Part shown: in pieces, positions 710 to 63,082 of the stretch
Position numbering within the stretch: position 1 is the first letter of the stretch
How the letters are laid out: the number at the start of each line of letters is the position of its first letter
NCBI GenBank assembly: GCA_043228905.1
Contig: JBHGNT010000008.1
Coordinates: forward strand, 19,468,001 to 19,532,000
Direction of reading: 5' to 3'
Length of the DNA: 64,000 nt
Origin: Azolla caroliniana
Taxonomy: Eukaryota; Plantae; Polypodiophyta
Notes under the pieces: model-generated
Database searches by the model: none
The model's input: the letters and a program-made list of their open reading frames with translations, nothing else
What the model was told of the DNA's origin: nothing
Position numbers and translations under genes: made by a program

Positions 710-930
710 TGTGAGGAATAGCGCTCGGTCACAAACCGAATTTCAATCATTCAGTGGAAGAAACAAAAAATAGAAATAAGACGACACACAGTATTAATGT
801 GGAAAACCCAGATCGGAAAAAACCACGGGAGCCCATAGACTCCAACTATCACTATGAGAGGAATACAAACATGAGAATCAAAGGCAACAACTTCGAGCTC
901 TATCTCTTCGCCAACTGGCGGTTACAACAG

Positions 931-934
<4 letters not shown>
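710..934 (-). mobile_element. Copia-family LTR, R/U5 part (left piece of a split LTR)
   Basis: The reverse complement (CTCTGTTGTAACCGCC..GGCGAAGA..CATAGTGATAGTT..CCGTGGTTTTTTCC..GGGTTTTTCCAC) aligns by eye to the 3' half of the Copia LTR at 6378-7190. It ends CA at 710 with no PBS beyond it. Confidence 0.75.

Positions 935-995
<61 letters not shown>
935..995. repeat. (CT)n microsatellite
   Basis: About 30 perfect CT units at the 5' junction of the LINE. Confidence 0.98.
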
Positions 996-1000
<5 letters not shown>

Positions 1001-1575
1001 CTATCAAAGATAAGTGTATGGGCTGAAAAAAGTGGTAAGAGAGCTTATGGACAAGCTAGCTTTCGGAAACACCATAGCACCATTGATCACCTTATCACCC
1101 TTCGAGTATTAATGGAGGAAAGTCACCTTAGAGGTAAAAGTTTATATTGTTGCTTTGTAGACTTCAAGAAAGCTTTTGATATGGTACCTCGTGAGCATCT
1201 TTGGAGGCGAATGGAAGAACTTGAGGTGCCAAGTGAATATATGCTTGCAATTTCCCGAATTTATGAGAAGGTTATATGTTGTGTGCGCATGAGAGATAAA
1301 CTTTCAGATTTTTTCAAAAGCACTATTAGTGTTAAGCAAGGATGCCCACTCTCACCAACACTATTTGTTCTATGCATTGATGAATTGGAAGAAATGGTTA
1401 CCAAGTTTGCAAAGGAAGAATGTGTTGATTCAGAAGTTGCCATTGGGAATGTTGTGATTATGCTTTTGCTATATGCAGATGATTTAGTGCTTTTTGCAAA
1501 TACTTTAGGAGATGCACAAAAGCTTATGAAGGCATTGGAAAAATTTTGCATGCATACTAAATTAAGTGTCAATAG
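996..1575 (+). mobile_element. 5'-truncated RTE-group (RTEX-like) LINE, N-terminal part of RT
   Basis: RT motifs Q.SFR..HSTIDH, FVDFKKAFD, KQGCPLSPTLF and LLYADD. The frame is broken at 1576 by an LTR element and resumes after 17886. Confidence 0.9.
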
Positions 1576-2039
1576 TGTTAATCCTTAGGGCCAGACAACA
1601 GCCTAACACAAGGTGTCCACTTAAGACACTTCACCAAAGGGTGTTACGGCGAGATAACTTACGACACAACGCTTAATTGGACCTTAATCGATTACTTAGC
1701 AATACATCATTAACACGCGTAAGATATACAATAAGCACAGAACGGTGAACAATACTCAATGATTAGATAAAAGGTTTATATTACTCTCCGTTAATGACTA
1801 CATTATAACCAGGCCTTTATATAGGTAACCGGTGCGAAGTACAAAACGGTGTCAACCGGCACCTATTCGGGATCGGTCCGGATCCGGATCAGCATACCGA
1901 TTCCGGTCTGTCCGTCCACATCTTCTCATATATTAATCTATATATTAAGACTAGTAATTTCAACAGATTCCTAAATAACAATTCCCCTTTTCACACCCTG
2001 GTTTTTGCCGTCCTTAGCTCCTTTGTCGGCCGGGTAACA
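1576..2039 (-). repeat. Gypsy 3' LTR (464 bp)
   Basis: Direct repeat of 17425-17886, about 18 substitutions plus a 2-bp indel by eye (~4%). Confidence 0.95.
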
Positions 2040-2091
2040 CATGGCATGCCCGTGGGACAGTACCTTGTACGTCGAATCCCACAACGGCCCC

Positions 2092-4863
2092 TTACTGTTC
2101 GTACAAGATATCCAGGATGCTTTGCTCCAGGGTCTCCAGTGGTTCTATGAGAATCTGTTGTGGCTGTTGTTGTTGCTACGGCTGCTCTGGTTGTGGCTGG
2201 GGTTGCTTCTCCGTTTGTGGCTCCGACTCTGGCTGCGGCTCCAATGGTTGCTCTGGCACCGGCGTTTCCTTCGTTGTTTCCTCCGTCAGAGTTGTCTCTG
2301 GTTGACTTACCCCGGCCTGGTCTCCGTCTGGTCCTTGTACCGGTGACGGTTCCTCATCACTGAGGTTGACCATTGCCGCCTGCCTTGCTTTTTCTTCCCT
2401 AAGCCGGGACTGCTCATAGCTCTCAAACTGGATTTGAGCATCCATCTGATCGTCGTCCAGTTGAGCTATGAGTTGCCGGACCTACACCAATTGCTCATCT
2501 GCCACAGCTGTGAAATCTTCTGCTAGCTCATGTCCTTTATGGCGGTGAAGTCCTCCGATGTGAGCATGTAACAGTCGTCACCTTCCTTCCGCCGGTTTTC
2601 GGCGTCCGCCCTGAGCAACTGGAGTTTAGCCAAATTCTACGCCCATTTCTTCCACCATCGCACGGAGCTCTCGTCAATCAAGCGTTTGGTCTTGTTTAGC
2701 CATGCCCGGAGGATGCACTGGATCCGTTCCATTCCCATCTATGATTTGTTCTCCGCGGCTTGTCGCTCCTCTTTCAATTGCTTGATGATTCTGACCGTGT
2801 CCGCCTCCTGCTCCCTATAATGCGACAATTGACTTTGATAGATTGTTTGCAACCTCTGTGACACCATTGTCGCCCTCTCCCTTTCTTCATTGTGCTGCTT
2901 GTGGAGCTCCATCCGGTCCCTCGCCGCTTCCTCCAATAGCTTTGTATTCTCAGCCCATTCGTCGACGAGTGCTGTTCTGGCCCTATCAGCTTCTTGCCGG
3001 AGCTCGGCCATCCTTTCCTGTTGTTGCTTATACTCTGTGTCCAAACTCTTAAAGTTCCGGTGCAAGTGGTCGAAGTTCTCATTCTTCTACTTCAACTTCT
3101 GGTTGATTTGCTGGCGAGCGCAGTCTTCCCAGTCCTTTTGTTGACGGAGTTCTTCTTTCAACCTTTCGATTTCCGTTTCCACCATCCGTCGCAGCAATTT
3201 TTCTTTTTCCTCCTTTAGCCGGTTGTAAGCTTGATGCCCTTTCCGCAGATTTTCTTCTGCCCGGCGGAGGTTTTCAGCAGTCTTCCTTAACTCCTCTTCT
3301 GCCGCTTTCTTCAAATCTCGTTCACGACTCCGTAGTGCTTCTTGTGCGGCAAGTTCGTCCCTTAATTCAGCAAGCTCTTGGGCTTGTGCCGCATCTTTCT
3401 CCGGGACGGTTTCTGTCTCTTGGGTCTTATTCGTATGTACAGGCGTGGTTGTTTCTTTATTTTGTACATCCAAGGGAGTCACCGATGCTTGGATCTGTGT
3501 TGCGGTTAAGGCCATTTTGGCCATGTCTTCTGTGACCTAATCCAAGTCTTGTTCAAGGCACCGGATCCTTGACCAAGCCGTCTCTAGTTCATCGGTTGTG
3601 ACTAGCAACCGTTACATCTGCGCTCGTTCTTCCGTCTCTACATACAGTATCACTCCGGCAACCGGCTTTCCTATCCACCGGAGCCATTGGCTGCCAGTAC
3701 CCTCTTGTTGCGTCTGCACGGAGGGTTGGCTGATGGGTTCACTTGCCAATGGCCGGTCCCGCCTAACTGCATCGAGTTGCACTTCCTGCTCTACCTGCTA
3801 ACCACTTTGCCGTTCAGGTTCCGGTTGTGTTTCGGCTTGTTCTTGGCCGGCTGAGGAAGGTGGCACATGACTTACCGACGCTTGCGTTTCGGGGCTTGCC
3901 GGTATTGCCTGTTGTGCAGGGGCTTCTGAGACCGGCTCCATCCGAACCGGTTCCGGTTCCTCCCTTGGCGTGGGATTCTCAGTTTGGGGTAAAGGCGTTC
4001 CATCCTTCTATGGGTTCGAACGCTTCCTGGCTGATTCTGCGGTGCCCCGTAGGTTCCTCTGTTTCCTCCTCCTGAGTCTCGGCATTCATTCTTGCCGCCA
4101 GGGTGTCCGTTTCTTGCTGCATCAGTCGGCGGAGTGTGCTCTTCAAGGGCCGTGCCGGTGTCTCCTCCTGCGTGTCCGTCGGCTGCTTCCAGATGGCGTG
4201 CTCCTTCGCCGCCTGCTCCGTGTTGGTTGTTTTCCCCTTAGTGGTCTTGGTGGCCAACAGCTACTGTCGTTTTGAAGCAGCTTTCGGGGTGTCGTCCGTT
4301 GCTCTTCCCTGCTTCTTGGTCTGGACGGGCTCGACAGGTGGCGCCAATAGGGTGAGCCATTGCGCCACTGCATGCCATATTTTGTGGCCTTCTTTGGCTT
4401 CCTTACCTCTTACGGTGTCGATAGCCGCACACAATCCGTCGGCGATCAGCACCGGCCAATCCACCTTGACCCCTTCGTATGTTGCAATGATCAAGCCTGC
4501 TCGGTTCTGAGGCATGACGGGGGGTCGAGGGTATACGTGGCCGAACTCATGGAGTACACGGGCAATTTCTCATAATAACATATCTTCTCCGCCCTGTGTC
4601 TTGTAGCCCTTGCTGGCCAAAGAATACTCGCCGAAGTATTTGATGAGCTATTCGGAGGTAGGGTTGTCAATCGTATAGATGCCCCCCTCCGGAAGGCCTG
4701 TTAGTGCACGAATCGCTTCCTCCGTGATCAACTTGGTGTCAATTTCTTTCATGATCTTGTCGGCTTCTCTGTGTGGTGGTGCTTCCATGATTGTGAGGAA
4801 CCCCTCCAATCCGTGTTGTCGTAACCATTTCTTGGCGGCCTCATAGAGAGTCTAGCAGTCCAT
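2092..4863 (-). pseudogene. Extra (env-position) ORF of the Gypsy element, ~920 codons, disrupted
   Basis: ATG at 4863 is in frame with ORFs 4261-4515 and 3979-4257. After a frameshift it continues through 3087-3524 and 2739-3065, and after a second frameshift through 2176-2445 to TAA at 2092. It has an N-terminal globular part, then an E/R/Q-rich coiled coil and a P/Q/E tail. Confidence 0.75.
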
Positions 4864-5224
4864 GTCTGCGTCGAGGTCGGGCAGCGTTGGTGAGAGTTGT
4901 GTATGAGGAAGCTCTGTGTGAGGAAGCTCTGTGTGTGTTGGCTCTGTTCTGATGATCTTCAAGCGCCTGTGTGCGTCTGTGCTCCTTGGTTTCTCTCTGC
5001 ATCTTGGCGCCTTTTTCGAGCCTACGCATGTGCAGGTCGTGTACTATAATAGCATTATGTGCCATGTGGCGATGGTTTAATGCCCTATTCATAGCCCCCT
5101 CGTACCTTTTCGAAGTGCCTCTTTACTCCTCGTTTGCATGGCCGTTCCCACCACTCCTTTGCATGATTTCTTTGCTTCGTTTCGTTTCTTTTTTCTTTTT
5201 CTTTTTTTATTATCAATTGTTAGG

Positions 5225-5918
5225 TTAATTCGCCTCCAGTCCTATCGGACCCTTACCCGAATGAGGAATCTTGTCGGCCTCGTGACGGTTTGCCGTCCTC
5301 TTATCCAACCCGTCTACCGGCTCTTTGTCCCCCTTATCGGCTTCATTGTTGCCGATTGCTAATCGGGTTGCCGTTGTTTCCGGTATTCCGGTATCTGGTT
5401 CGGCATCGACCTTTCCTTGTTCAAATGGGTTCCTCGGCATGGGTCCCTTGTATGGCTTTAGTCGCAATCCGTTGACCCACTTACCCAGGACTTCGCCAAC
5501 AAGTGTCCCTAATTGGTAGGATCCATTGAACTCGCGTGTGATCCAGTACGGTCCGGTCCACCGAAACCGTAGTTTCCCCGGCATCTTTCCCATCCAGGTC
5601 TGGAACACTAGTACCGGCTTGCCGATTCCAAACATCTTTTCATTTCCTATTCGGTGGCGATCCACAAACGCCTTTCATCGCCGCTACTCCAGTTCCAGGT
5701 GCATGATACTCGCTAGTCAGTGTTCTTCTAGTTCACATAGAGGCGCTAACCGAATTGCCTCCGATTCCTTCTCGTTTAACTGTTCCCTAATCTGAATCCA
5801 TAAGCTCGGGACCTGGAACTCTACCGGCATGACGGCCTCCAATCTGAATGCTAGCTGGAACGGTGTGGTTTGGATGCTTGTTTTGTGGGCTGTCCGGTAA
5901 GCCCAGAGTGCGTTGTGC
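5225..5918 (-). pseudogene. Gypsy integrase, C-terminal part
   Basis: HNALWAYRTAHKT..TPFQL and the GPY/F motif GKLRFRWTGPY..WVNGLRLKPY. No chromodomain. Confidence 0.9.
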
Positions 5919-6377
5919 CGGCTGATGTGGATACCAGCCGGTCTACATCCGGGTATGTAATGACATATGCAGGGGGAGCTGTTTCATGGCAGTCGAGGCT
6001 GCAGAAGACGGTTGCATTGTCAACCACAGAGACGGAGTACATGGCGGTTGTGGAAGCCGGCAAGGAAATCTTATGGATGAAGGACTTCATCGGAGAGCTC
6101 GGTATCCGGCAAGATGAATACCGAATCTATTGCGACAGTCAAAGTGCCATCCACCTTGCTAAGAATGCGGCCTACCATTCCCGAACGAAGCATATCCAGC
6201 GGAGGTATCACTGGATCCGGGAAAGAGTAGATGACCAGGAGTTCGCGCTGATGAAGATCCACACGACCGAGAATGGGTCAGATATGCTGACCAAAGTGCT
6301 GATACCCGACAAGCTGGATGCATGACAGAAGAGAATCGGACTGGTAAGACACCCCATGCCGAAGTGAAGGGGGAGTC
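5919..6377 (+). mobile_element. Truncated upstream Copia copy (RNase H + PPT) sharing the LTR at 6378
   Basis: Near-identical to 10818-11276 (ADVDTSRSTSGY..SWQSRLQ..CDSQSAI..RTKHI). Ends in PPT GAAGGGGGAG directly before the LTR. Confidence 0.92.
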
Positions 6378-7190
6378 TGTTGGGAGACAGGTCCCTCCGA
6401 ATGGGAAGGGAGAAGAACAGTGCCGATGAACAAACTCAGCCGAGGCCGAAACCGTATGAGGAGGACCCGGCTACGGAGAGCCGGATGGTGCAGACCCGGT
6501 ATGAACCGGATGAGGAGTACCCGGCTACGGAGAGCCGGATGGTGCAGACCCGGTGAAGACCGGATGAGGAGTACCCGGCTACGGAGAGCCGGATGATACA
6601 GACCCGGTGAAGACCGGATGAGGAGTACCCGGCTACGGAGAGCCGGATGATACAGACCCGGTGAAGACCGGATGAGGAGTACCCGGCTACGGAGAACCGG
6701 ATGGTGCAGACCCGGTGAGAACCGGATGAAGAGACATATTCGTAAATATGTTTCTGAGAGTCCATCGAGGCTATATTTGTAAATAGCCGAAAAGTCATAT
6801 TAGTATAAATATGACTTAGGGCAAACTTTTAATGACTGTTGTTGTGGTTGTCATTTCTTGTTGGTGCAAGAAAAGAGAGTGTGCGTAACTGTACAGAGAG
6901 TGAGAGAGAGAAAGAGATCGTTGCCTCTGTTGTAACCGCCGCCTGTGGCGAAGATCGTGAGCATGAGGTCGTTGCCTCCGTGAACTCACTGTTTGTACAT
7001 TCCAACATAGTGATAGTTTGCAGCCTGTGGGCTGCCGTGGTTTTTTCCCCTAGTTTGGGGTTTTCCACGTAAACATCCTGTGTACCTTTTCTCCCCTTTT
7101 GTGTCGTGCATTTACTTCCCGTTTTCTGTGTATGATTCTAAGCTCGGTTGTGGCCGAGCGTTGAGCATAAGGAACGACAAGTTCCCGTCA
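6378..7190 (+). repeat. Copia LTR with an internal 54-bp tandem repeat
   Basis: TGTTGGGA...TCCCGTCA. About 5 copies of a 54-bp unit at ~6455-6730 (anchors 6558, 6612, 6666). Confidence 0.95.
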
Positions 7191-7219
7191 AGTGGTATCA
7201 GAGCGAAACGACACAGAAA

Positions 7220-10200
7220 ATGGACGAATCGTTGGGCGGCATGTTCAAGCTCACCGGCTCCAACTATTCAGTGTGGAAGTCGAAGATGAGGGATATGCTC
7301 ATGGTAAAAGATCTTTGGCTGCCGGTTCAGTTTGGGGACAAGAGACCGGACAAAATCGATGCCACGATATGGGAGGTGATGCACATGAAGACAACGGCGT
7401 ACATACGGTGCCTCATCGACATGAGCCTGTACAACAACTTCAATGAAGAGAGCAAGGCTCATGAGCTCTGGGAGAAGATCGGCATAATGTTTCAAAACAA
7501 AAATGATGTTAATCAGGTTTCGGTATTCCGGAAGCTAGTAAGACTACGGTACCAAGATGGCTCCAGCATGGCGGAGCACATGAATGACTTCCAGGGGCTG
7601 ATCCACCAGGCAACTCCATTGGAAGTACCTCTCGCTGATGAGGTACTAGCGCTACTCCTGCTCAGTTCCCTCTCGGATAGCTGGGAGACGTTGGTTGTCA
7701 CTTTGGGCAACCCCGGGCCGGAAGGAAAACGGTTATCCCTAGCAAGAGTAAAGTCGAGCTTGCTAGATGACGAGGCGCGTCGGAAAGATAAAGATATGAG
7801 CTCCGACTCCAAAGCGCTCCTTACCAAATCGGAACGCGGAAGACATAGAAACCGTAGTCCCCAGAACCGGGAGAAGTCGGGGACACGGTCAAAGTCAAGG
7901 GGGAGGCCCACTTGCTTCTATTGCGGCAAGCCGGGACACTTCCAAAAGAACTGTCGGCATTTCCGAAAAGATAAGGAGACCGACAATACCGATTCGAAGC
8001 GGACCCCAGACCGGAACGGTAAAGACCGGAGGGGGCCGGACCGGAAGGGAACGACGGCAATCGTGGCAAGTGAAGAAGAGTTGATGCTCATCACCGAGGA
8101 GAGTGAGATAAACCTTGCCGCCGACGAGATGACCTGGGTGGTAGACTCCAGAGCATCGTTCCACCTTACCCCGGACCAGAAATGCTTCTCATCCTACTCA
8201 ACCGGTGATCACGGCTGTGTCCGGATGGGGAATGAAGGTACATGCCGAATTGTCGGCATAGGAGACGTGTGGCTGTCAACACCAACCGGATGCAAGTTGC
8301 TGTTGAAGGATGTCCGACACGTTCCGAAGGTTCGACTGAACCTGATATCAGCCGGTCGGCTAGATGATGAGGGCTACACGAGTAGCATCCGGAACGGTGT
8401 CATGAAGTTCAGCAAAGGGAGCCTGATTGTGGCTAGAGCCCGGAAGGTCAACACCCTGTACCTGATGAATGCCCGGTTATGTCTGGAAGAAGTGAACCTG
8501 GTATCCGACACTGCCGGTGAGTTGTGGCACAAGAGGTTGTGTCATATGAGCGAGAAGGGGATGAAGAGGCTTGCAGACGACAACCTCATTCCAGTGAAGA
8601 ACGTGCACTTGGAGAAGTGCACTGATTGTCTGGCCGGTAAGCAAAACCAGACCTCCTTCCGACCAAGGCCACCGATGAGACGTAATGCACCACTGGAGTT
8701 GGTGCATACGGATGTGTGTCAAGTAGACACGAAGTCACATGCCGGAGCGCAGTACTTCATGACGTTCATAGATAACCACAGCCGGAATCTGTGGGCCACA
8801 CCGTTGAAGACGAAGGATCAGGTGTTATCCGTCTTCAAAGAGCTCCACGCAAGAGTGGAAAGAGAAACCAGCCGGAAGCTGAAGGCGGTTCGAGCAGATA
8901 ACGGAGGTGAATACCGGGGGCAATTCGAGGAGTACTGCCGCTCGAAGGGAATCCGGCTTGAATTTACCGTGCCGAAGACGCCGGAACTAAACGGACTGGC
9001 CGAGAGGATGAACCGGACCATAATGGAGAGGGTCCGGAATATGCTAGCGCATGCAAAACTACCCAAGAAGTTTTGGGCTGAGGCACTATCGACGACAACA
9101 TATGTGATAAATAGATCACCCTCAGTACCCTTGGACGGAGACACACCACAGAGAGTGTGGACCGGTAAAGAAGTGTCCTACCGGCACCTGAAGGTATTCG
9201 GGTGTCTCGCGTACGTGCATGTAGCTAAGGACCGGAGAGGAAAGTTAGATCCAAAGACCTGGCCATGCATATTCCTCGGTTACGGTGACAATGAGTTCAG
9301 CTACCGAGTGTGGGACCTGGTCGACAAGAAGGGATTCCGGAGTCGAGATATTATCTTCATGGAGGACAAGACACTCGCCGACTGGGAGTCGGAGAAGAAG
9401 ATAATGAACTCCGAGTCGACCGGTAAGGATAGACTCTACGATGAGCAGACCCAACCGACAAGAGACCGGCTAGCACTCGAGGAACCAGCCGGTTACGATG
9501 AGGATACCGAACCGGCAGAAGAAGAAGTAGAGGAAGCTGAGACCGGAACCGGCCAAGACCCCGAATCGGATTCAGATGAAGAGCAAATGGAGGAACCGGT
9601 TACCGAAGCCCGAAGACGGAGATATCCTCTCAGAGAGAGAAGGGCCCCCCGGAGATTTCCGGATGCAGAGCATGTTCTGTTGACCAATGAGGGGGAGCCG
9701 GAAATCTTCGAAGAAGCGAAGGAAGACACCCACAGCCGAAAATGGTTAAGTGCCATGCAAGATGAGATGGATTCCCTGCATGAGAACCATACGTACGAAT
9801 TGATGGAGTTGCCGAAAGGAAATAAGGCACTCCGAAACAAGTGGGTGTACAAGTTGAAACCGGGAGATGTCGGCAACCCCCCGAGATACAAAGCCAGGAT
9901 CGTGGTGAAGGGGTTCCAGCAGAAGAAGGGCGTGGACTTCGACGAGATATTTGCCCCGGTAGTAAAGATGACCTCCATCCGGACGGTGCTGAGTATAGCG
10001 GCAAGCATGGACCTTGAGGTAGAGCAGTTAGACGTGAAGACGGCATTCCTTCACAGTGACCTCGAAGAAGAGATCTACATGCAGCAACCGGAAGGATTCG
10101 TGGAGAAAGGGAAGGAGCACCTGGTTTGCCGGTTGAAGAAGAGCCTCTACGGGTTAAAGCAGGCCCCCCGGCAATGGTACCGGAAGTTCGACTCCTTCAT

Positions 10201-11266
10201 GACCGATCAAGGGTACCACAAGACGCAGGCCGATCACTGCGTGTTTGTGAAGAAGTTTGAAGGAGGCGACTTCCTGATACTCCTTCTTTACGTGGATGAC
10301 ATGTTGATTGTCGGACGTGACCAAGTCAAAATACGAATGTTGAAGAAGGCTCTCAACCAGACCTTCTCAATGAAAGACTTGGGTCCGGCAAGACAGATGC
10401 TGGGGATGCACATCATTCGGGACCGGTCAACAAAGCAATTATGGCTGTCACAGGAGAAGTACGTGACAAAGGTGCTTCACCGGTTCAACAAGTCTGATGC
10501 GAAACCGGTCGGATCGACACTTCCGGCAAACTACAAGCTATCCGGTAAGCAAAGCCCGAAGACGAGAGCAGAGAAGGCGGATATGATGAAGATTCCATAT
10601 GCCTCTGTCGTCGGGAGCTTGATGTACGCAATGGTTTGTACCCGACCGAACATAGGATACGCAGTCGGAGTGGTGAGCCGGTTTATGAGCAATCCTGGCA
10701 AGGAGCACTGGAACGCGGTCAAATGGACACTCCGGTATTTGAAGGGCACTTCAAATATGTGACTCCGATTCGGCTCCGGAAAACCTCAATTTGACGGTTT
10801 CACTGATTCGGACATGTCGGCTGACGTGGATACCAGCCGGTCTACATCCGGATATGTAATGACATATGCAGGGGGAGTTGTTTCGTGGCAATCGAGGCTG
10901 CAGAAGACGGTTGCATTGTCAACCACAGAGGCGGAGTACATGGCGGTTGTGGAAGCCGGCAAGGAAATCTTATGGATGAAGGACTTCATCGAAGAGCTCG
11001 GTATCCGGCAAGATGAATACCGACTCTATTGCGACAGTCAAAGTGCCATCCACCTTGCTAAGAATGCGGCCTACCATTCCCGAACGAAGCATATCCAGCG
11101 GAGGTATCACTGGATCCGGGAAAGAGTAGATGACCAGGAGTTCGCGCTGATGAAGATCCACACGACCGAGAACGAGTCAGATATGCTGACCAAAGTGCTG
11201 ATACCCGACAAGCTGGATGCATGCCAGAAGAGAATCGGACTGGTAAGACACCCCATGCTGAAGTGA
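7220..11266 (+). pseudogene. Copia gag-pol polyprotein with one in-frame stop (10760-10762)
   Basis: CFYCGKPGHFQKNC knuckle, WVVDSRAS (DSG altered), GAG-pre-integrase WHKRLCH, integrase HTD/ADNGGE/AERMN, RT LYVDD, RNase H. The frame continues after the TGA. Confidence 0.95.
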
Positions 11267-11276
11267 AGGGGAAGTC

Positions 11277-12089
11277 TGTTGGGAGACAGGTCCCTCCGGA
11301 TGGGAAGGGAGAAGAACAGTGCCGATGAACAAACTCGGCCGAGGCCGAAACCGTATGAGGAGGACCCGGCTACGGAGAGCCGGATGGTGCAGACCCGGTA
11401 TGAACCGGATGAGGAGTACCCGGCTACGGAGAGCCGGATGGTGCAGACCCGGTGAAGACCGGATGAGGAGTACCCGGCTACGGAGAGCCGGATGATACAG
11501 ACCCGGTGAAGACCGGATGAGGAGTACCCGGCTACGGAGAGCCGGATGATACAGACCCGGTGAAGACCAGATGAGGAGTACCCGGCTACGGAGAACCGGA
11601 TGGTGCAGACCCGGTGAGAACCGGATGAATAGACATATTCGTAAATATGTTTCTGAGAGTCCATCGAGGCTATATTTGTAAATAGCCGAAAAGTCATATT
11701 AGTATAAATAGGACTTAGGGCAAACTTTTAATGACTGTTGTTGTGGTTGTCATTTCTTGTTGGTGCAAGACAAGAGAGTGTGCGTAACTGTACAGAGAGT
11801 GTAAGAGAGAAAGAGGTCGCTGCCTCTGTTGTAACCGCCGCCTGTGGCGAAGATCATGAGCACAAGGTCATTGCCTCCGTGAACTCACTGTTTGTACATT
11901 CCAACATAGTGATAGTTTGCAGCTTGTGGGCTGTCGTGGTTTTTTCCCGTAGTTTGGGGTTTTCCACGTAAACATCCTGTGTACCTTTTCTCCCCTTTTG
12001 TGTCGTGCATTTACTTCCCGTTTTCTGTGTATGATTCTAAGCTCGGTTGTGGCCGAGCGTTGAGCATAAGGAACGACTAGTTCCCGTCA
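11277..12089 (+). repeat. Copia 3' LTR
   Basis: Direct repeat of 6378-7190. Confidence 0.95.
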
Positions 12090-15000
12090 GCGACAATTAC
12101 ATACTGGTTACCGGTTCGCATTGTCGGTGGTTTAAATGGACCCACAAAATCCAGCCCCCATTTCTGAAATGGTTCTAACGGCAATATTGGCTAGTGCGGC
12201 ATCCTAGCTTGTTCGGTTGGTTGGCCCATTCGCTGACATAGATCGCATTCTTTAGCGTACCGGACCACGTCTTTCAATGTTGTCGGCCACCATAGGCCAC
12301 TCTGCCATATCTTCCTTGTCGTAGCATCTCCGGCGTAATGGCCTCCGGCAACTCCGCAGTATGCTTCTCGTAGTATTATATCCTTCTGTTGTCTGCCGGA
12401 ATAGAAACCAACGGACAAAAGCGTAGGAATAAGAAATTATATAAGAGCATAACGCATGTAACGGTTCACGCAGGAAGCGTGAACGGCTAATTAGACCCTG
12501 CATATATAAAGGGCAGAAAACCTCTGATGGAGGTGCGTGTAATTTTGGGTATGTAAAGAAACACCTGATAATAGAATTCTATCTTCTCTGATTTTCTATG
12601 TATAGTTGCGGCTAATTCAGTTTCGGTGTCTTGGATACTTAAGCGTGGTAGTACGTAAGTGTAACCCTTGGTAGGGATTCGGTTGTAGCCGTCTTCCCTT
12701 ATACGCGGATAGGTTACAGGGGTTCTCCCCTTACGCATTACGCTTAAACCCCTGTTCGTTGTTCCACACCCACCTTGAGGTCTAGGTCGAAGGACTGACC
12801 ACGGACCGTGTTCCTAAACGGCAACACCTTCTTGTCATTGCGCACTGCCCGTCGCCATATACCATCCGCGCCTTTGTGGTATAGCGTGTCCCGTACTAAA
12901 CAGAAGTGCCGGCTTTGTACCGCCAGGCGTTTCCTCTCGTCCCGGTTCATCTCCTCCGGAGGCAATCCGGTGCTCAGAAATTGTTGCATATTCGTTAGCC
13001 ACTTATCTTCTTGTGCCACCGTTTCATCTGTTGTTGTTTCCGCGGTGACTCGAAATAGCTCAGCATCCAGAAACTCGTCTGAGACTCCGTCACCAGTCTC
13101 ACCGGAATCTAACCAGCTCAAATAGTCTGCTACTGCATGCTGTATGCCGGGTCGGTGGAATATTTCGAACTCAAATTCCTGCAACAGTAACGTCCACCAT
13201 GCCAACTTACCGGTTAGTGACGCTTTGGAAACTAAGTAGAGGAGTGCCAAATGATCTACGTGGAAGGAAAATTTCCTTCCCAACAAATAATGTCTGAATT
13301 TTGTCATGCTATAGATCATGCCCAAAGCATCCCTTTCCGTGGTGGAATAATTTCGTTCTGCTTGGGATAACTTTCGGCTTGCGTAATATATGGGCCGGTA
13401 CCACCTTGGCTCCGTAAGTTGCATCAGCGCACTTCCGATTGCAATGTCGGACGGATCCACGAACACATGAAACTCCTCAGCCCAATCCGGGGGTTGCACT
13501 ACCGGCGTTTGCGACAATAGTATTTTGAGTGCCCGGTATGCCTTGTCTTCGGTGTCCGTCCACTGGAACGGTGTTCGGTGTACCGCAGCATGCAGTGGTG
13601 TAGCTAGGTCCGCCAGATACCGGAGCATTCGGCTATGCCACCAGATTTGACCTAAGAAACGGCTTAATGCTTTCGCCATTGTTGGTGCCGGTGCCTCCAA
13701 TATTGCTTTTACTTTGTCCGGGTCCACGGCAATTCCTTCCTTGCTCACAATGTGTCCTAATAGCGCCCCGCTTGACACTCCGAATACACATTTTGCCGGA
13801 TTCAAGCTTAGCCAGTAAGCCCGACATTTCTCTAGACACAGTCGGAGGTGCTAAAAGTGATCTCCTTCCCGGCTATAGACGGCGAAGTCATCCAGAAACA
13901 CCTGCATGAATGTCGGTATGAACTCTCCGAATATTTCCATGATGATCCTCTGGAACGTTGCCGGCACCGTTTTTAGTCCAAACATCATTACTACGGCAAC
14001 AAACACTCCCCATTCGGTGACGAAAGCCATTTTCTCCTGGTCATCGGTGTGCATCCAGATCTGGTTGTATCCGTTGAATCCGTCTAAGAAACTGTATACC
14101 TCATGGTCGGCGACTGCGTCCAAAACTCCATCCATAAATGGGAGTGGGAATGCATCTATTACCGTCGCCGCATTAAGCTTACAGTAGTCGACACAAACTC
14201 TAATTTTGCCGTTTTTCTTTGGTACGACTACTATCGGGCTCAGCCATGTAGATTTCTTTATTGGGCGGATAAAGCCAACCCTCAACAACTTGTCGATTTC
14301 CTCCTTGACTTTGGCGGCGTAATTTGGATTCATCTGGTAGCGCCGTTGTGCTACCGGTTTGGCGTCTTTACTCAAATGTATCTGATCTGATATAGCTGAG
14401 GATCGAGCCTCACATATCCTCGTAAGACCAGGCAAATACATCCCGAAATTCTTTGAGAAGTGCAATCATCGCCGTTTTGTTCTCTGGAGTCATTTCCTTG
14501 GCGATGTGCACCGGTCTCGCCTCTTCCGTAGTTCCTAGATTTACCTCCTCTAGTTGGGATGCTTTAACCCGTTGCGATACGGCCATTTCTCTTTCCAGGG
14601 CCTCCTGTGCTTGCCGTAGATCTCGGATCACTTCTTTATTTGGTTCCTCGTCGGCTCCGTCCGGTTGCAGTATGTATGGTGATACGGCTTCGGCTACGTC
14701 GATTTCGAACAGAGGTACAATCTTCGGATTATCCTGCAAATATTGATCTACCTCTTCGTCTGCTAATCCGTCCAGCATATTGACGCATTCGGCATATAGG
14801 GGTGTCAATTCCTTCCCGGTACCCGTCCGTGGTTGTGTCAGTACCTGTACTTTTGCTTTTCCCCACCGGAAGGTGATTATATTCTTCCTCCAGTTTTGTT
14901 AAATGTGCGTCGTTTTCAACCACGGCCGCCCCAACAATAGTGGGTAAGCTCCTTGTGCCTGTAGTTGTAGCACTACTGCCAAAATGCGAAATGTGTGGCC

Positions 15001-17369
15001 GTCGATCGTTACTTCCAAATCTCGTATCAAGCAGGTCGGTCGCACTGAGCTTGTATCCGCCATCCGCAGCCAGAACGGGCATGGTTCCCACTCTTGGATT
15101 CCCAAGGTTTTGCACGTTCGGAGGCTAATCACATTGACGTCGGATCCTCCATCTATTACTGTTCCGGGTAACTCCTTTCCCTTCACGATGGTTGTGATTG
15201 CCAGACTGTTTGTGTCTATTACCGGTCGTCCCTCCTCCGGATTTGAGAAGAATGTTGGAGCCGGTGGTGTTTCTCCTGCCGTCATGCCTGTCTTGAGTCC
15301 TTCTGTGAATCTGGGGACTAGCTGCAGGAGTCGTCCTAATGGCAACATGATTTGGCATTCCTGCAATGCCTGCCATGTCGCATTTTCGGGCTGACTGCCG
15401 CCGACGAGCTCTTCGGTATTTTGCTTTTGTTGCGCAAGCTCTGCCATGTTTCGCGCATTCGCCTTTTCTACCCATTCTGTTGCCTGCTTGTGGATGGCGT
15501 CTTGCGCCTCCCATTCCGTCGCCTTACCCTTCGATCTTGTGGTTACCTACTGCAGGTCTGCGACTTCGGCGATTACCATGTTCACCGCCGGTCGTTTATC
15601 ATAGCTCTTTGCCGGTCATTGATTACTATAATGTCCTTCTTGTCGGCAATAGTAGCAATATGCTTTCCGGGTAGTGCTGGATTCGGCGTTGTTTCATGCC
15701 CCCGGTGGAGGACCTGTGGTAACGGCGGGGCTTTGATCTGGTTGGTTGTTTGAGGCGCCCTTTTCCGGTTCCCGTAGGTAACCCCTTTCCTTGAAATGGC
15801 GTTTCTTTTTATTCTGATACTCTTAACGGGGCTGGTCATCATGTCTCCCGTAGGCTTCCTGTCGTTGGTTGTAACCGGGGGATTGGTCTCGATTGTATCT
15901 TTCATACCATCCATTATGATCCCGGTACCGATCATATCTATCATACCGGTCATAGTTGTCCCTGTACCGGACATCCTGTGTCGGTCGGTATCGCTCTTCT
16001 CGCCTCCAACGTTCTTCTTCCTCCTCCTTGGTACTCCATGGTTCGATTTGCCGAACCGGTGGTGCTTGGCGATTCAACAAATTGTACTCGCATTGCTCCA
16101 TTGTGTGGTTCCTGGAATGGCACAGTAGACATTACGACCGCATGGTACATTCTAGTGCTGAGTGTCCGGCATTTAGGCGTGTTGTCCATTGAATGGCCTA
16201 TCAAAACCGGAGATCCTCATCGGTTGGTAACCTCGTTGGAGTGCTCCCATTGTTAGCCACGAGCTTGTTTTCTCCATTTCTCTAACCTGGTCGATGACCT
16301 GGTCAACGGTACTTGTGCGAAAGTCGATGATCGTGCATACTGTACGTAGAGGTTCCCGAAGTGCGGCTAAGAATATAGCCCGTGTTTCTTCCTCCGGAGG
16401 TGTTCGGGTAAGCTGACTGTGCATCCGTTGAAACCGGATGACAAAATGCGGAATGCTCTCCCCAGGGTCCTGCCAGATGGTATAAAATAGGCCCACCATT
16501 TCTCTCTAGTCCACCTCCTTCTGAAAGAAGTGCAAGAATTTAGCTTTCAGGTCCGCAAAGGTGGTGATGGTGCTGGGGTCCTGCGTCCGGTGCCATCTGG
16601 CGGCCGGTCCTTCCAATGTCACGCCGAATTCGGCTATCTTAGATCGTTCCTCTTCGGTCGCGGTTAACCATTGTGACACATGGTTCGCCTCCCATGTTTG
16701 TTGAAACGCGTGAACATGAGTCTCCGCGTCCGGGTCATCCCTATACTTGGGGTACTAGAACCGCATGTCGTCGTCCGGTGTCGGTGCGCGGTCTGGCGGT
16801 GTCGGTGGTCTTTCCTGCTCTTCCGTCGGCGTCGGAGGTCGTGGTTGGTCCTCTGTCGGAGGTCTTTGCCGGTCCTCCTTCGGTGTTGTCGGCTCGACTT
16901 CCAGTGTCGGAGGTCTTTCTTTGTCCTCTTCTGTCTCCGGAGGTTGCTCCACGTCTAGTGTCAGGGGTTCCCGGTCTTACAATTTTGGATCTGGTGTCGG
17001 TAATGTATCCGACTCCTCGTCCTCCGGTCCTCTTGGGGTGTCGTTACTGCTGCGATAGTTCGTGTGCGCGCTGTAACCCCCTTCCGAATCTGATTCCAGC
17101 GTCGAAAATGCTTCGGATTCGCAGCCTCTTCCGGCCAAGGCCTGGAGAAGGGATTCCGCTTCCCGGAGACTGCTTAAGCTACTTCCTTCGTCCGGGTAGG
17201 CGTTTTGTTGCAGACGGAGCGACTCCTCCGCCACTTTCCGGATCACTTTGGAAAATGATCGATCCGATCGGATTTCATCTGCCGCTTACTGGAAAGCCTC
17301 TCGCTGCCTTCGCCGTTCAGCAAGTCTTCGTGCTCTCTCCGTAACCGGGTCGTCTGTTGGCCTAGTCAT
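12090..17369 (-). pseudogene. Gypsy gag-pol (gag, protease, RT, RNase H, N-terminal integrase), many stops and frameshifts
   Basis: Probable ATG at 17369. Gag Q.PGESI..F..RF, CCHC-type knuckles, protease VIDGGS, RT LDGFNGYNQI/FLDD, RH YYASR..ERNYSTTE, integrase zinc-binding region GGHYAG..CDLCQR and core start KWGLDFVGP. Confidence 0.92.
12387..12826. mobile_element. Solo LTR (440 bp) of an unrelated family inside Gypsy pol
   Basis: Ends TGTTG...CAACA with 5-bp TSD CCTTC (12382-12386 and 12827-12831). Removing it rejoins RRAVRNDK to KDIILREA. Confidence 0.9.
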
Positions 17370-17406
17370 CCATTCCCGTCGTTGTTCACTACGATTATGC
17401 AGGAAT

Positions 17407-17417
17407 CGTGGTCGCCA
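17407..17417 (-). promoter_or_regulatory. Gypsy primer-binding site, probably tRNA-Arg
   Basis: TGGCGACCACG lies 7 nt after the 5' LTR and is complementary to a tRNA 3' end ..GTGGTCG-CCA. The tRNA-Arg(UCG) assignment is from memory. Confidence 0.65.
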
Positions 17418-17424
17418 AAAACTT

Positions 17425-17886
17425 TGTTAATCCTTAGGGCCGGACAACAGCCTAACACAGGGTGTCCACTTAAGACACTTCATGAAAGGGTGTTACGGCG
17501 AGATAACTTACGACACAACGCTTAATTGGACCTTAATCGGTTACTTAGCAATACATCATTAACACGCGTAAGATACAATAAGCACAGAACGGTAAACAAT
17601 ACTCAATGATTAGACAAAAGGTTTATATTACTCTCCGTTAATGACTACATTATAACCGGGCCTTTATATAGGTCACCAGTGCGAAGTACAAAACGGTGCC
17701 AACCGGCACCTATTCGGGATCGGTCCGGATCCGGATCGGCATACCGATTCCGGTCCATCCGTCCACATCTTCTCATATATTAATCTATATATTAAGACTA
17801 GTAATTTCAACAGATTCCTAAATAACAATTCCCCTTTTCACACCCTGGTCTTTGTCGTCCTTAGCTCCTTTGCCGGTCGGGTAACA
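17425..17886 (-). repeat. Gypsy 5' LTR (462 bp)
   Basis: Direct repeat of 1576-2039, adjacent to the PBS. Confidence 0.95.
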
Positions 17887-17891
17887 AATAG

Positions 17892-19066
17892 CGCTAAAAC
17901 AAAGATTATGCTTGTGAAGAGGCAAAAAAGAGATAAACCACGCATTATGTACAACAATGAGCCACTTGAATGTATGGAAAGCTTCAAATATCTTGGCCTT
18001 GAAGTTCCTTCAAATCATAGATGGAATGAATGTGTTACACGCCGCTTAGAGGCGGGCAAGCGAGCATACTATACATTTGAGAACACATGCAACCTTGGAG
18101 ATATTAAGTGTTGGGTCCTCAAGAAATATCTTTTCGACACTTTGGTGACACCGGTTCTTCCCTATGGGGTGGAAGTATGGGGCGGTAGCATCCCTAAATC
18201 TATGTGGAAAGAGTTTGAAAATGTCCAAAAACATTTTCTTACAAAGTTTCTACAAGTTAAGAAACAAACGCCCTACACCCTCCTCCTCCTCCTTGAGACG
18301 GGATCGCTTCCCATTGAGACCATGGCCATGGAAAGGGTTGTTGAATACATGCTTAAGGTTCAAAAAAGTCCCTCACATCGACTTCCTAGAATTGCGTGGG
18401 AAGCAAGCAAAAAGATCCAAAAGACACATAAAAGCAAAATTTTGTGTTCCGGTTGGATGCAAGATATAGAAAAATGGTTTGGTATATGGGATGCGAGACA
18501 CTTGCTTCATGATGCATCATTAGATTCCTATGTAAATGAGGCCTTTTTGCAACGCCAATGTATCATGACATGGGACAAATGTGGAGGCTCGCGCATCACA
18601 CATTATACTACACATGTTGCACCTAACTACAAAACCATATTCTTTGCGGAATGGGGAAATCTTACACATCGATACATGTTAGAGCCCATACCGTTATCTG
18701 CCATTTGAACCATTGCTTCCATGCGACTTAGCTCACATGCATTGCGATGTGAAACAGGGTGTTGGGGCACAAGTGATGAGAGTGGTCTGCTATGCACACT
18801 TTGCCATAAACAAGTTCGCGATTTTGAGTATCACACTTTGATACAATGCTCTGCCTTTGATCATATTCGACCATGCTTTCCACATCTCTTCGACCGAGCC
18901 CAATCTTTGCATGAATTCCTCTCACAAACACAATGTGCACTCTCGATTGCAACATTCATTGGTAAAGTTCTTGAACATCGAGAGTCACTACTCACTTTCA
19001 CACATATCACGTGAAATGTAATATTTTTGGTCTCATAGGTCATATTTGACCTCCGAAGATGATAAT

Positions 19067-19070
<4 letters not shown>
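17892..19070 (+). mobile_element. RTE-group (RTEX-like) LINE, 3' part
   Basis: KTKIM..FKYLG thumb, LFDTLVTPVLPYGVEVWG, RLSSHALRCETG and a CxxC..H....C finger. Stop at 19014, then a short 3' UTR that abuts (TC)n. Confidence 0.9.

Positions 19071-19135
<65 letters not shown>
19071..19135. repeat. (TC)n microsatellite between the two LINEs
   Basis: About 32 perfect units. Confidence 0.98.
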
Positions 19136-19138
<3 letters not shown>

Positions 19139-21598
19139 GTAAATCAATGTTTTGTTATTAAAACAAGATGATAATACAACCCTTGCTATCTTCACTACAT
19201 CATGAGTAGTGATAATGCATGGGAAACCCTCTCAAGTGTTGCAAAACTAGATGGCATACCTCTATCTCCTCTCGGGACAATGTCCCCAAAGAACATAGTT
19301 GCGAAAATTGCCACATCAATTTCCCTCTCATCCTACGAAGTTGTTGTGTTACCCCATGAAGTCCATCAAACAAGAACCCATTTCTCATGGTCCAATTAAA
19401 CCACATCCCCCAATACCTAAGGTAGTCAAACACGATCTTATATGATGGTGTAGGCATGCCTTTATTGTCATCAATAAAATCCCAATTAAAAGGTGACAAA
19501 ATATTGCCTGTTATCGATGCCCAAATCTGTGATATAACCACTCAAATGGCTTTAGCAACCGGACATGTAATGAACCTATGTCTGGCATCTTCCTCAACCA
19601 CTGTGCAAAAAAAACATGTCCCATTTGAAATATTTCGCCGTTTTAAAGCCATCGCCAATGGCAACCCACCAACAATCACACGCCAAAGAAACACCTTAGC
19701 ACGAAACGGAAGATGAGACTGACATCCTGCATCCAGAACTCTAGTCCACCACTTTGCATGTCGAGTAATATACCATGTGTTTGCAACCTTGGTTGCTAAC
19801 CAAGCTCTATCTTCAACCAACTTATGGTATACATCATTAGTGTTCACCACAAAATTGATTGTCCAATACCAAACGACCAATCTTTCCATGAGTCCGCAAC
19901 CAACAACATTGGAATCGGGAAAACTAATCTAGGCAATGCCAATATTGATTCCCAAATGTACCCATATCCCCGTGGTATATGAAACTTATTTCTAATTGTC
20001 CTAAAGGCCATCATTTTCCTACATGACTGTAATATACCATCTTCCACCGTTACCAATCCCAGCCTGGCCATTCTATTAAACTGTGTATTTAGGTTTTCTT
20101 TTCCATCCCAATGTAGTAGCCTTGAAGATGCCAATACCTCTGCTACCAAGGAATTAGTATCTTTTCTACACGTAGGGGGGCTCCAATGAAATAATTCCAA
20201 GCATCGCTGCCAAGAAAGCACTAATTGTTGGACCATAATAGATTCTGAACATTTAAATGCACGGGTACTATTAACAACATGCCACCACGATGTTCTAATT
20301 CTGGTTTTCCCATGGTATATACCAACCTTTTCCACAAAATAACGAATTATTTCTGCCCAAGGTTGGGTACCTATGCACATACCTTTCAACAGATTGAATC
20401 TTCGAGCCACCATATGATCCTCCAAGTTTAGTAATGCAACTCCCCCTAACCGTTTTGGAGTACAAATATTGTTCCATGATACCCAACTCATACCCAATCT
20501 TGATTCTTTCTTCCACAATGTATATTTAAGTGAACGAGCTAATTGATCAAGTGATTTCTTTGTCCAAGGTAATAATGGCAAAAAATAAGAAATCATTGGA
20601 ATCATTATAGCTTGTACCACTTTGAGACGAGTACTAAATGGCCATGCTTGAGACTTCCAATACATAAATTTGTCTAAAATGGTCCCCGATATCCAATTCA
20701 AACTTTGAGACATTGAGATATCAACACCAATAGGGTAACCTAAGTGCCGACACACATTGCCTTGATCCAATATTTGGCCACACCATCCAAGATCCACCAA
20801 ATCACTCTCAGTGCATCAGTAATGAGCATCAACTTTCGCATATTTATATGTAATCCTGACGCCAATGCAAACACATTCCACACCTCCATGGCTTTTGCTA
20901 TATTATCGGGTACTGCTTTGAGGAATAAGAACGAATCATCGGCCAATGCTTGTGCTATCAATTGTTTTCCTGATGGCAGAGCTAGTCCAACTATTTCCCC
21001 ACATGTTGCCAACTCATGCATCTTCACCAAAATCGGGTGTGTAGCAATTGCAAATAACAATGGACTCAATGGGCATCCTTGTCGAAGTGATCTTGTCAAT
21101 GGTATTGCTTTAGTTACTCCACCATTTAACATAATGTGTGACACTGCACCTAATCCCACCAACAAGGGGATGTGAGACATCCTTTCCCCAAAACCCATAT
21201 GGGACAAGAGTTGATTAATAAAAGACCAACTTACATGATCATATGCCTTCTCGATATCTAGTTGTACCATTACAATTTGTTGTTTGGATTCTTTTGCATA
21301 ATCCACTGCCATTTGCACATTCAAAATATTATGCAAGATATCCCTTCCTTTAATAAACCCATATTGCATTGGATGAACCACAGACGACAATACCTTTTGA
21401 AGTCTATTTGCAATTACTTTGGCAAAAATCTTATACAACCCACCCATTAATGATATCGGTCTCCATTGAGCAAAAGACGTAGGAGATGCCACTTTTGGTA
21501 TAAGCTTAACTAGGCCTATTTTCCATGAATCGGGCATTTTACCAGAACTCCACACTTCTTGGAATAACATTGTTAGAGGCCCTTTGAGTTCTTTTACA

Positions 21599-21601
<3 letters not shown>
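19136..21601 (-). mobile_element. 5'-truncated L1/Tx1-type LINE (RT + zf-RVT), frameshifted
   Basis: WRPISL, QYGFIKGR, LDIEKAYD, RQGCPLSP, LADD, HLGYP, and the C-terminal KVFLWR..CFFC..H.FITC. Confidence 0.92.

Positions 21602-21650
<49 letters not shown>
21602..21650. repeat. (CT)n microsatellite
   Basis: About 24 units at the 5' junction of the L1. Confidence 0.98.
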
Positions 21651-21653
<3 letters not shown>

Positions 21654-21746
21654 GCTCTGTACAACAATGATGATAATCTCTACATATAACAGTGTTGCCC
21701 TAGTTATATTTATACTTATATAACTTTGGGGCTATTTACAAATATT
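21651..21746 (-). mobile_element. Copia-family LTR, TATA region (right piece of the split LTR)
   Basis: The reverse complement ATATTTGTAAATAGCC..AAAGT..AGTATAAATAT.AC.TAGGGCAA..TGTACAGAG matches the segment just upstream of the GA tract in LTR 6378-7190. Confidence 0.8.
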
Positions 21747-25727: not shown

Positions 25728-25815
25728 TGTTGGAGACGAGGTCGTCTATGCGGAAGATCAAGAAGCATTCGATTCTGTTCTGAATACCTGCGTATGACAG
25801 TTTCTAGTCGTTGCA

Positions 25816-25847
<32 letters not shown>

Positions 25848-61830: not shown

Positions 61831-63082
61831 AGGATTATCTTGCTTGTTGTAGCAGGTCAATTGTACATAATATTGAACAGTATTCGACTTTTGTGTAGTG
61901 TGCGAAAATTTGACTTTCATGATTGAAAATCTTTCATAGAAAGTCCATTGGACATTTTTAGCAGATTGCTATTCTGATGTATATACATATATTGTGACTC
62001 AAAAAGTCCATTTGACATTTTTATTAGACTGCCATTTCAAATGTATATATATTAGTGGCATTGTCAACAGATGTGACAATGTTATGTTTAATTATTCATA
62101 GTGAAAATTCCACTTGCTTGGTTAAGGTGGTCTTTTATGCATGTAGGATAATAAGCTTTCAAGTAGCTAGCCAAAGCTATTGATTTATGATGTTATTAGA
62201 CTTAAACAAAAGAGTTTGCACACTTTTCATCAGCTACCATTAACGCATTTATCATCAGCCATAATTAATGCTTTTTATGGGTTGTGTCAATGGACATAAT
62301 CAATACCATCATTGCTGTCTAATAAAGATCAAGTCAAGTCACACCCTGTAGAATAATATGGCCATGAGATCTTTCATCCAGTATCTCAAGACTTTGAATA
62401 ATAGATCTTAGTCTTCTATTTGCCAGAATGAGTGATATATTCTTTAGAGATCTTAAAACTGTGTTGATCTCTTTTGGACCACTTTGCTAAGTGCCAAACA
62501 TCTAGTTAATTTTCTATTATAGAGAATGTGGATGTTAGCACAGATACATGAATCAAGAAGGTTTGAAAATGTATTGCTCTCATAAGCTTCTAGCAGTTTA
62601 TTACAATTTCTCTTTTTAGATGTGTGTATGGTTGGGTTAAATCTATATGTTGGTCTAATTTGATACAATGGTTGTGGACAATTTACCGGATCTCCTCGTA
62701 TGTATCAGGTTTAAATACTATAATGGCATAGCTCAGAACCATATGGAGTTTAAATCATCTTGAACTCTCTTGTTGCACACCCAAATTAGTTACATAAAAC
62801 TACACAAGGGACACAAAATTTTTAGTTTGACTAATGTGTTCTTATTAAAATTGTGTACAAAACATTTGAATGAATAAGACCAATTTTAACCGAGGTGAAG
62901 CAATGATTGAAAGTAGTGAGTAGAATAGAAATTGTATCATCCATGAAGAGGCCAAATTTGACCTATGGAATGAAATCAACATATCATCTTGTATGTGACT
63001 CCTTCCTAAGAAGGGAGGTTTTCATTGCATACCTTAGATATCTTCAAGTATCAATTTGGTTGCATTGATACTCAAACATATA

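Follow-up and report, generated by a model that had tools for sequence, protein, structure and literature searches.

Introduction

Long interspersed nuclear elements (LINEs) that insert into microsatellites have been described in animals: Kibi in (TC)n and Koshi in (TTC)n of fish, both belonging to the Tx1 clade, Waldo and Mino of the R1 clade, and Dong in (TAA)n (PMC3812793; PMC4640811). The target-specific LINEs with an apurinic/apyrimidinic endonuclease (APE) that have been reported belong to Tx1 and R1 (PMC4640811). A hallmark of the RTE clade is an unusually short 3' untranslated region (UTR) ending in short simple repeats (PMC1291365). In RTE-related retroposons and Au-like short interspersed nuclear elements (SINEs), the tail repeats correlate with the first nucleotide of the target site duplication (TSD), for which Nishiyama and Ohshima 2018 (PMC6007223) give a pairing model; the same paper reports (GTT)n tails for plant RTE elements, with a T-stretch signature and microhomology limited to one or a few bases. 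In Lepidoptera, RTE elements generate microsatellite families, which Tay et al. 2010 (PMC2887409) attributed to tails and slippage alone. For ferns or other plants, no account of LINE integration associated with microsatellites was found in the part of the literature covered. Here, a stretch of 64,000 nucleotides of the fern Azolla caroliniana is described (the window; assembly GCA_043228905.1, contig JBHGNT010000008.1, positions 19,468,001 to 19,532,000, forward strand), in which two LINEs of different type, one RTE-like and one resembling plant L1, are bordered at all their ends by (CT)n tracts.

Three CT tracts at the ends of two LINEs

The purity and unit number of the tracts were determined with Tandem Repeats Finder on the window sequence. 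Three pure (CT)n tracts with 100% matches were found, at 935-995 (30.5 units), 19071-19135 (32.5 units) and 21602-21650 (24.5 units), and all four ends of the two 5'-truncated LINEs fall in them, so that the coordinates given in the original prediction were borne out. The RTE-like LINE on the plus strand (996-1575 and 17892-19070) and the L1-type LINE on the minus strand (19136-21601) are antiparallel and stand tail-to-tail at the middle tract, while each 5' end meets an outer tract. The first tract, (CT)30.5 on the plus strand, is the 5' flank of the RTE-like LINE. The middle tract, (TC)32.5 on the plus strand, separates the two 3' ends and occupies the tail position of the RTE-like LINE on the plus strand and that of the L1-type LINE, as (AG)n, on the minus strand. 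The third, (TC)24.5 on the plus strand, forms the 5' flank of the L1-type LINE and reads (GA)n on the sense strand of that element. CT/GA runs of at least 16 nt make up about 0.4% of the window, as estimated from coordinates; since all four LINE ends lie in such tracts, chance is a poor explanation.

The nest was resolved by comparison of the window with itself and by Pfam scans. The outer flanks, at 710-934 and 21651-21746 and both on the minus strand, are the left and right parts of one Copia-type long terminal repeat (LTR) fragment, as had been proposed. In a blastn comparison, 815-934 and 21683-21745 matched neighbouring parts of a Copia LTR at 5916-7190 in reverse orientation, with 78% and 86% identity respectively (the latter over 64 nt), and by eye the homology of the left flank extends back to about 720. 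The first tract lies at the LTR position where, in this relative, about 28 nt form an imperfect, CT-rich stretch (6895-6925, minus strand), including (GA)5 at 6902-6911 on the plus strand; the earlier remark that the relative carries only a short GA stretch at this spot was thus correct. Two independent insertions into one LTR-borne tract, also part of the original prediction, are supported by this anatomy and by the related LTR.

The LTR homology stops at about 21745, where a 5'-truncated Copia begins on the plus strand, with Pol_BBD, gag_pre-integrs and rve domains and a tblastn match to residues 331-1204 of the Copia polyprotein. This Copia lacks gag and extends over 21745-24560 (plus strand), beginning where the LTR fragment ends on the right. 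About 170 nt to the left of the fragment, a CCHC knuckle of gag was seen at 480-560 on the minus strand, with no recognisable primer-binding site. The host LTR is a fragment within a rearranged Copia cluster, yet its two halves are contiguous.

The window copy of the RTE-like LINE starts inside the reverse transcriptase (RT) domain (5' piece, RVT_1, E 8e-23). It is split by a Gypsy LTR retrotransposon at 1576-17886 on the minus strand, with RT_RNaseH and RVT_1 domains on that strand, a pair of 464-bp LTRs with 95.7% identity and a perfect 5-bp TSD, AATAG, at 1571-1575 and 17887-17891. The reading frame of the LINE is the same on both sides of the Gypsy and the translation continues from 17892 onward; the 3' piece contains the RT end and a C-terminal Cys/His motif and, after a stop near 19012, a 3' UTR of about 55 nt with the conserved terminus of the family. 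A Copia on the plus strand (5916-12089), encoding a polyprotein with RVT_2, rve and gag domains and bordered by 1275-bp LTRs of 97.5% identity, is nested in the Gypsy and is younger than its host.

The RTE-like family

Evidence on the families of both LINEs was taken from 91 fetched fern loci (designated by L numbers), the 78 RTE-like loci coming from one search for relatives. The nearest named protein relatives of both elements were found in the fern Adiantum nelumboides, with 73-78% identity for the RTE-like piece and about 50% for the L1 type; contigs of ENA assemblies ERZ10343xx/ERZ10344xx and ERZ272272xx reached 84-94% identity. Family copies L006, L012 and L016 extend upstream of the point where the window copy starts (996).

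With its 3' UTR of about 55 nt after the stop near 19012 and its (TCTA)n/(TC)n tails, the plus-strand LINE has the 3' end typical of RTE elements, and its putative RTE label is drawn solely from these 3'-end features. Its RT aligns with human L1 ORF2p in the core RT alone (E 1e-17) and almost equally well with R2 (6e-13). APE-like motifs were recognised upstream of the RT in L004, where Pfam calls no domain. Pfam searches of the C-terminal region and of the upstream open reading frame (ORF) of L004 gave nothing beyond RVT_1, a weak match to DUF5477 below the cut-off being ignored, and a protein-cluster search for a clade signal of the RT returned only generic RVT_1 clusters. A protein of 228 amino acids (P0014) with 77% identity to the RTE-like LINE of the fern carries the label Enterobacter cloacae complex sp. 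2DZ2F2B, probably because plant DNA has contaminated a bacterial assembly.

The 3' end could be read in 21 distinct copies, which have a common terminus of about 45 nt. This terminus is conserved in 15 aligned copies and is kept between the window, L004 and L089 of Adiantum. Directly after it, 16 of the 21 ends show at least two TCTA units, a CT run of at least 6 nt, or both. The usual tail consists of 2-5 TCTA units followed by TCTC and then unique sequence; long tails occur in L009, with (TCTA)5(TC)20, and in L074, with about 17 TCTA units. The window contains a second, degenerate copy on the minus strand (62925-63977; tblastx matches at 63059-63977, terminus and tail read in 62925-62990), in which the terminus is followed by a short TCTA-like tail and no long CT tract.

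For an indication of abundance, the depth of Logan contigs from four runs of four organisms was summed over 17892-21800, excluding 19061-19148 and 21592-21660. Over the RTE-like part it ranged from 1e5 to 3.5e5 and increased toward the 3' end, compared with 1.3e3 to 2.2e4 over the L1 part. The RTE-like depth was 30-100 times the L1 depth in the four runs from four organisms, depth not being copy number. This shows that the RTE-like family is very abundant, its 3' parts more so than its 5' parts.

A 5' junction was defined as the point upstream of which the sequence is unlike the family, and 52 such junctions were scored on the sense strand for a perfect CT run of at least 7 nt within the 20 nt of flank nearest the junction. 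A run was present at 12 of the 52, compared with 0.79% of 97,530 control windows drawn from these loci (binomial p about 9e-15), an enrichment of about 30-fold for CT on the sense strand. Most of these runs end at the junction itself. The complementary GA run was found at one of the 52. The original prediction had asked for flank enrichment and orientation to be compared with background, and both came out in its favour. By age, 8 of 24 copies with at least 85% identity had the CT run, against 4 of 39 older copies. The counts at the 5' junctions of both families are lower bounds, because short-read contigs rarely pass through long dinucleotide tracts.

RTE-like copies were also found stacked in one another's tails (L033, L040, L074 and L075/76). 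At L040:1470-1615, two tandem RTE-like 3'-terminal fragments of about 60 nt have the same start; a CT run stands before each of them and a TCTA/TC tail behind. The pair represents either extreme 5' truncations or the duplication of one unit. Directly upstream of some RTE-like 5' junctions, stretches resembling the head of a tRNA-derived SINE were observed, with a GGTTCAAAACCC-like box and some of them then running into (CT)n, at L047:40-125, L044:~2930-3004, L015:~2130-2203 and L031:~430-502. ARAGORN found no tRNA in such upstream stretches.

The L1-type family

The minus-strand LINE of the window carries RVT_1 and zf-RVT domains. Through 5' truncation it begins where the RT starts; it contains several frameshifts and stops and has a 3' UTR of about 65 nt ending in ...GATTTACGAA, a terminus common to L082-L085. 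In its relative L003, with 79% nucleotide identity to the window copy, ORF1 carries DUF4283 and a CCHC knuckle, ORF2 carries APE (Exo_endo_phos) and RT (RVT_1), and this ORF2 is colinear with human L1 ORF2p over residues 3-823 (E 1e-48). An N-terminal APE and a colinear RT in the relative, together with the C-terminal zf-RVT of the window copy, are features of the L1 clade. The original prediction had called this element Tx1-like; its zf-RVT, the colinearity with L1 ORF2p and the ORF1 of L003 with DUF4283 and CCHC do not bear out that label, and the element looks like a plant L1 instead. The two LINEs are assigned to different groups, because the ORF2 of L003 aligns along L1 ORF2p and the RTE-like RT over the core RT only. 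A search of genome contigs with the C-terminus of the L1-type element gave no relative.

Ten independent 3' ends were available, from the window, L082-L087 and the Adiantum loci L001, L002 and L090 (L091 being a duplicate). All ten terminate with ...ACG(G)AA or a close variant; an A run of 0-9 nt comes next, and after it (GA)n or sequence rich in A/G. The window copy passes almost directly into (AG)32. Since the A run stands before the GA, the best reading is that the target begins with this GA and that it is not a templated part of the 3' UTR. At the 5' side, six junctions were visible, three of them with a GA tract: (AG)24 in the window, (GA)25 in L002 and a GA-rich run of 15 nt in L085. The association with the repeat is present in two fern lineages, Adiantum being the second genus.

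In Adiantum, a called Syja_N gene on the other strand has its end about 0.5 kb away from the (GA)25 tract hit by the L1-type copy (L002:4943-4992). Directly after L1-type tails, an Adiantum element of about 500 nt was noted which itself ends in (GA)n (L001:7022-7527; L002:1-424 and 7360-7424). Its first 45 nt or so recur after an L1-type tail in an Azolla-type contig (L084:~700-990) and, inverted, after an RTE-like tail (L038:3896-3950, reverse); the end in L084 is a second ...CTACGAA(GA)17 terminus. This element may be a non-autonomous partner on the same GA tracts.

Integration probably favoured by pairing of tail and target

Each of the two families is linked to a single strand of the GA/TC repeats, and two such LINEs in one tract must therefore be antiparallel, as they are in the window. 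The anatomy of the window, the tails of the families, the enrichment in the 5' flank, the strand rule and the stacking were all observed directly. Probably, the two unrelated LINEs integrated separately into a CT stretch borne by the LTR, favoured by pairing between tail and target during target-primed reverse transcription (TPRT). The Copia-type LTR would have borne a CT-rich stretch, the kind of starting tract likely being that of the related LTR (about 28 nt). Two separate TPRT insertions, both giving 5'-truncated copies, would each have split the tract and left repeat on both sides; two such events account for three tracts around an antiparallel pair. The RTE-like LINE would land where the sense strand reads (CT)n and the L1-type LINE where it reads (GA)n, the 3' end of the RNA pairing with the nicked strand of the GA/TC tract and so favouring the start of reverse transcription; the primer strand would be the purine strand for the RTE-like family and the pyrimidine strand for the L1 type. 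The tract may then have been lengthened by tails, target duplication and slippage, totalling 175 nt now compared with about 28 nt in the related LTR, and Gypsy and then Copia would have nested after the LINE insertions. Tails and duplicated target could in turn seed new tracts which serve as further landing sites, with stacking of copies as the outcome. We infer the pairing as cause, the order of the two insertions and the shares of target, tail and slippage in each tract.

Several points weigh against this explanation. At 40 of the 52 RTE-like 5' junctions there is no repeat, some of these being alignment breaks or later insertions, and the same holds for three of the six L1-type 5' junctions (L088, and L001 and L090, which have one common 5' start). 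The L1-type sample is small, with 10 3' ends and 6 5' junctions. Other long GA tracts in the Adiantum loci do not adjoin LINE ends, and L089, the sole Adiantum copy of the RTE-like family examined, has no repeat tail. For the RTE-like terminus a 6-bp hairpin was predicted, and the alignment contained no compensatory changes or covariation. The loci are short-read contigs picked by protein similarity, and such contigs break at long repeats. TSDs are not delimitable within repeats, so that the shares of target and tail are inseparable, and the junctions of the window are those given by the assembly. The preference is clearly not absolute. At the complete copies L009, L068, L090 and L001, no convincing duplication was found.

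Taken with these points, the GA/TC preference of both families is real but not strict. The proposal that two LINE clades target TC stands as far as a strand-specific tie goes, which recurs in independent contigs and extends, for the L1 type, to a second genus of ferns; strict specificity does not, given repeats at 12 of 52 and 3 of 6 5' junctions. Two of the findings named beforehand as speaking against it concern the flanks. One was a predominance of copies in non-microsatellite sequence, and indeed most of the sampled copies lie outside long microsatellites, yet CT at the 5' side is enriched over background. The other was a repeat borne by the element at its 3' end only. The RTE-like 3' repeat is in good part element-borne, in the form of the (TCTA)n to (TC)n tail, so that site specificity of the Kibi type is only putative; the CT in the 5' flank is not explained by this tail, which lies at the 3' side.

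A GATGATAAT motif near the RTE-like end, in the L1 3' UTR (on the opposite strand) and in the LTR flank was considered as a signature of template switching. This was dropped, the first two occurrences being conserved family sequence and the one in the LTR being most simply chance.

Alternative explanations

The two families could instead be truly sequence-specific LINEs, whose apurinic-type endonucleases recognise and nick (TC)n/(GA)n itself, in the way proposed for Kibi or Waldo, and whose tails are a by-product of constant insertion into the repeat. A strand-specific association in both families would be expected of such elements, the GA after the A run of L1-type tails suggests target-derived GA, and the copies of L002 and the window lie between tracts of 50-65 nt on both sides; copies in long tracts are moreover under-sampled by short-read contigs. 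Many copies have unique 5' flanks, among them L001, L090 and L088, however, and the TCTA unit of the RTE-like tail differs from the target unit. As recognition of (TC)n by the endonuclease is only putative, and pairing of tail and target fits the data at least as well, sequence-specific nicking is considered unlikely as the main cause. A wider proposition covers either route: that ferns harbour microsatellite-homing LINEs which arose independently in the plant-L1 and RTE-like lineages, each recognise one strand of (GA/TC)n via endonuclease or RNA tail, have been kept since the split of the Azolla-type and Adiantum lineages and build stacked LINE/SINE arrays. It is put forward tentatively, as a possibility that on balance we doubt.

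Absence of any targeting, with the repeats being element-borne tails expanded by slippage and the double hit a coincidence or the mark of a permissive region, is very unlikely. It is true that RTE-like copies bear tails whatever the flank, that RTE tails are known progenitors of microsatellites (PMC2887409) and that L001 and L090 have (GA)n at the 3' end only. A tail gives no repeat in the 5' flank, yet there the RTE-like family shows its 30-fold CT enrichment and the L1 type its three GA junctions. The related LTR, moreover, has a CT stretch at exactly the insertion site, and all four LINE ends in the window lie in tracts making up about 0.4% of it.

Mirror repeats of GA/TC form H-DNA, which is fragile. 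LINE RNAs with complementary tails might prime at breaks in such tracts, independently of an endonuclease, which would account for two clades at one kind of site; the strand rule could still arise if the tails pair with a free 3' end. Insertions of this kind are typically 3'-truncated, whereas nearly all copies have an intact 3' end precisely at the family terminus, and at many of them the CT run is so short that H-DNA is unlikely to form there; little credence is given to this route. An assembly artefact joining unrelated sequences across (CT)n is the least credible of all: perfect dinucleotide tracts of 49-65 nt are hard to assemble and no Logan contig of the four runs bridges any tract (the contig layout omits 19061-19148 and 21592-21660), but the outer flanks restore one contiguous LTR across 20 kb, the Gypsy has a perfect TSD with the LINE frame restored across it, and the same kind of LINE-microsatellite junction occurs in independent assemblies.

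Other features of the window

Two direct repeats of 292 bp with 99.7% identity, at 25728-26019 and 30880-31171, are probably the LTRs of a young element. Both carry a microsatellite of the (GA)9 type (25818-25847 and 30970-30999) and no LINE insertion. A 54-bp tandem repeat (5.2 copies) was found in both LTRs of the nested Copia, at 6451-6733 and 11350-11628.

Implications

Should the homing proposition be true, these elements would be the first target-specific APE LINEs outside Tx1 and R1, and the first in plants. If the preference extends genome-wide, a repeat tail can steer target choice in ordinary LINE clades, neither Tx1 nor R1, and ferns would offer an example from nature in which each of two clades takes one strand of the same microsatellite. 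It would account for part of the GA/TC microsatellite landscape of ferns and for stacked retroelement arrays, with a bearing on marker design and repeat annotation. Tracts of GA/TC are common in plant promoters and 5' UTRs. They are therefore not simply a safe haven and the preference could affect gene regulation; the L002 copy near the Syja_N gene is a case to consider. Integration guided by a tail is also relevant to the engineering of insertion tools based on retrotransposons.

Comparison with known systems

For UnaL2 of eel and CR1 of birds, in which a particular 3' end with its repeat tail is recognised by the RT, slippage and pairing at initiation have been proposed. The RTE-like fern element resembles these in that short tandem repeats come after a conserved 3' terminus; it differs in clade and host, and its predicted hairpin lacks support from covariation. 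As with the lepidopteran RTE elements, 3'-terminal fragments with simple-repeat tails spread and supply many microsatellite loci, and extreme 5' truncation is common (compare the 60-nt copies of L040). The lepidopteran work reports neither a repeat in the 5' flank nor a second clade on the complementary strand (PMC2887409).

The likeness to RTE LINEs and Au-like SINEs lies in the very short 3' UTR, the simple-repeat tail, the conserved 3' terminus and the suggestion that the tail helps to choose or prime the target. Unlike the RTE elements of PMC6007223, the fern element has a (TCTA)n/(TC)n tail, its matching target is a CT run of several units and it carries a C-terminal Cys/His motif, its RTE membership being putative.

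With the Kibi group, the fern LINEs have in common that they lie inside microsatellites in a fixed orientation, and (TC)n/(GA)n is the same repeat as the target of Kibi. The orientation is seen in the 12 CT runs versus one GA run and the 16 pyrimidine tails out of 21 of the RTE-like family, and in the purine tails of all ten L1-type ends. Repeats on both sides of essentially all copies are characteristic of Kibi-type LINEs; in the fern families the repeat stands at 12 of 52 RTE-like 5' junctions (8 of 24 in younger copies) and at 3 of 6 L1-type ones, about a quarter to half of those sampled, in contrast to the sequence-specific Kibi group. The Kibi group is known from animal hosts and belongs to Tx1, R1 or R4, whereas the host here is a fern and the elements are of plant-L1 type and RTE-like, as judged from domains, colinearity and 3' ends. 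The fern LINEs are best placed as a variant of the known tail-guided or microsatellite-associated LINE integration, operating at the level of families, strand-specific and present in two clades. What sets them apart are the match to CT/GA over several units, the enrichment at the 5' junction, the self-stacking, the second, unrelated clade on the complementary strand and the L1-type behaviour in two distant fern lineages.

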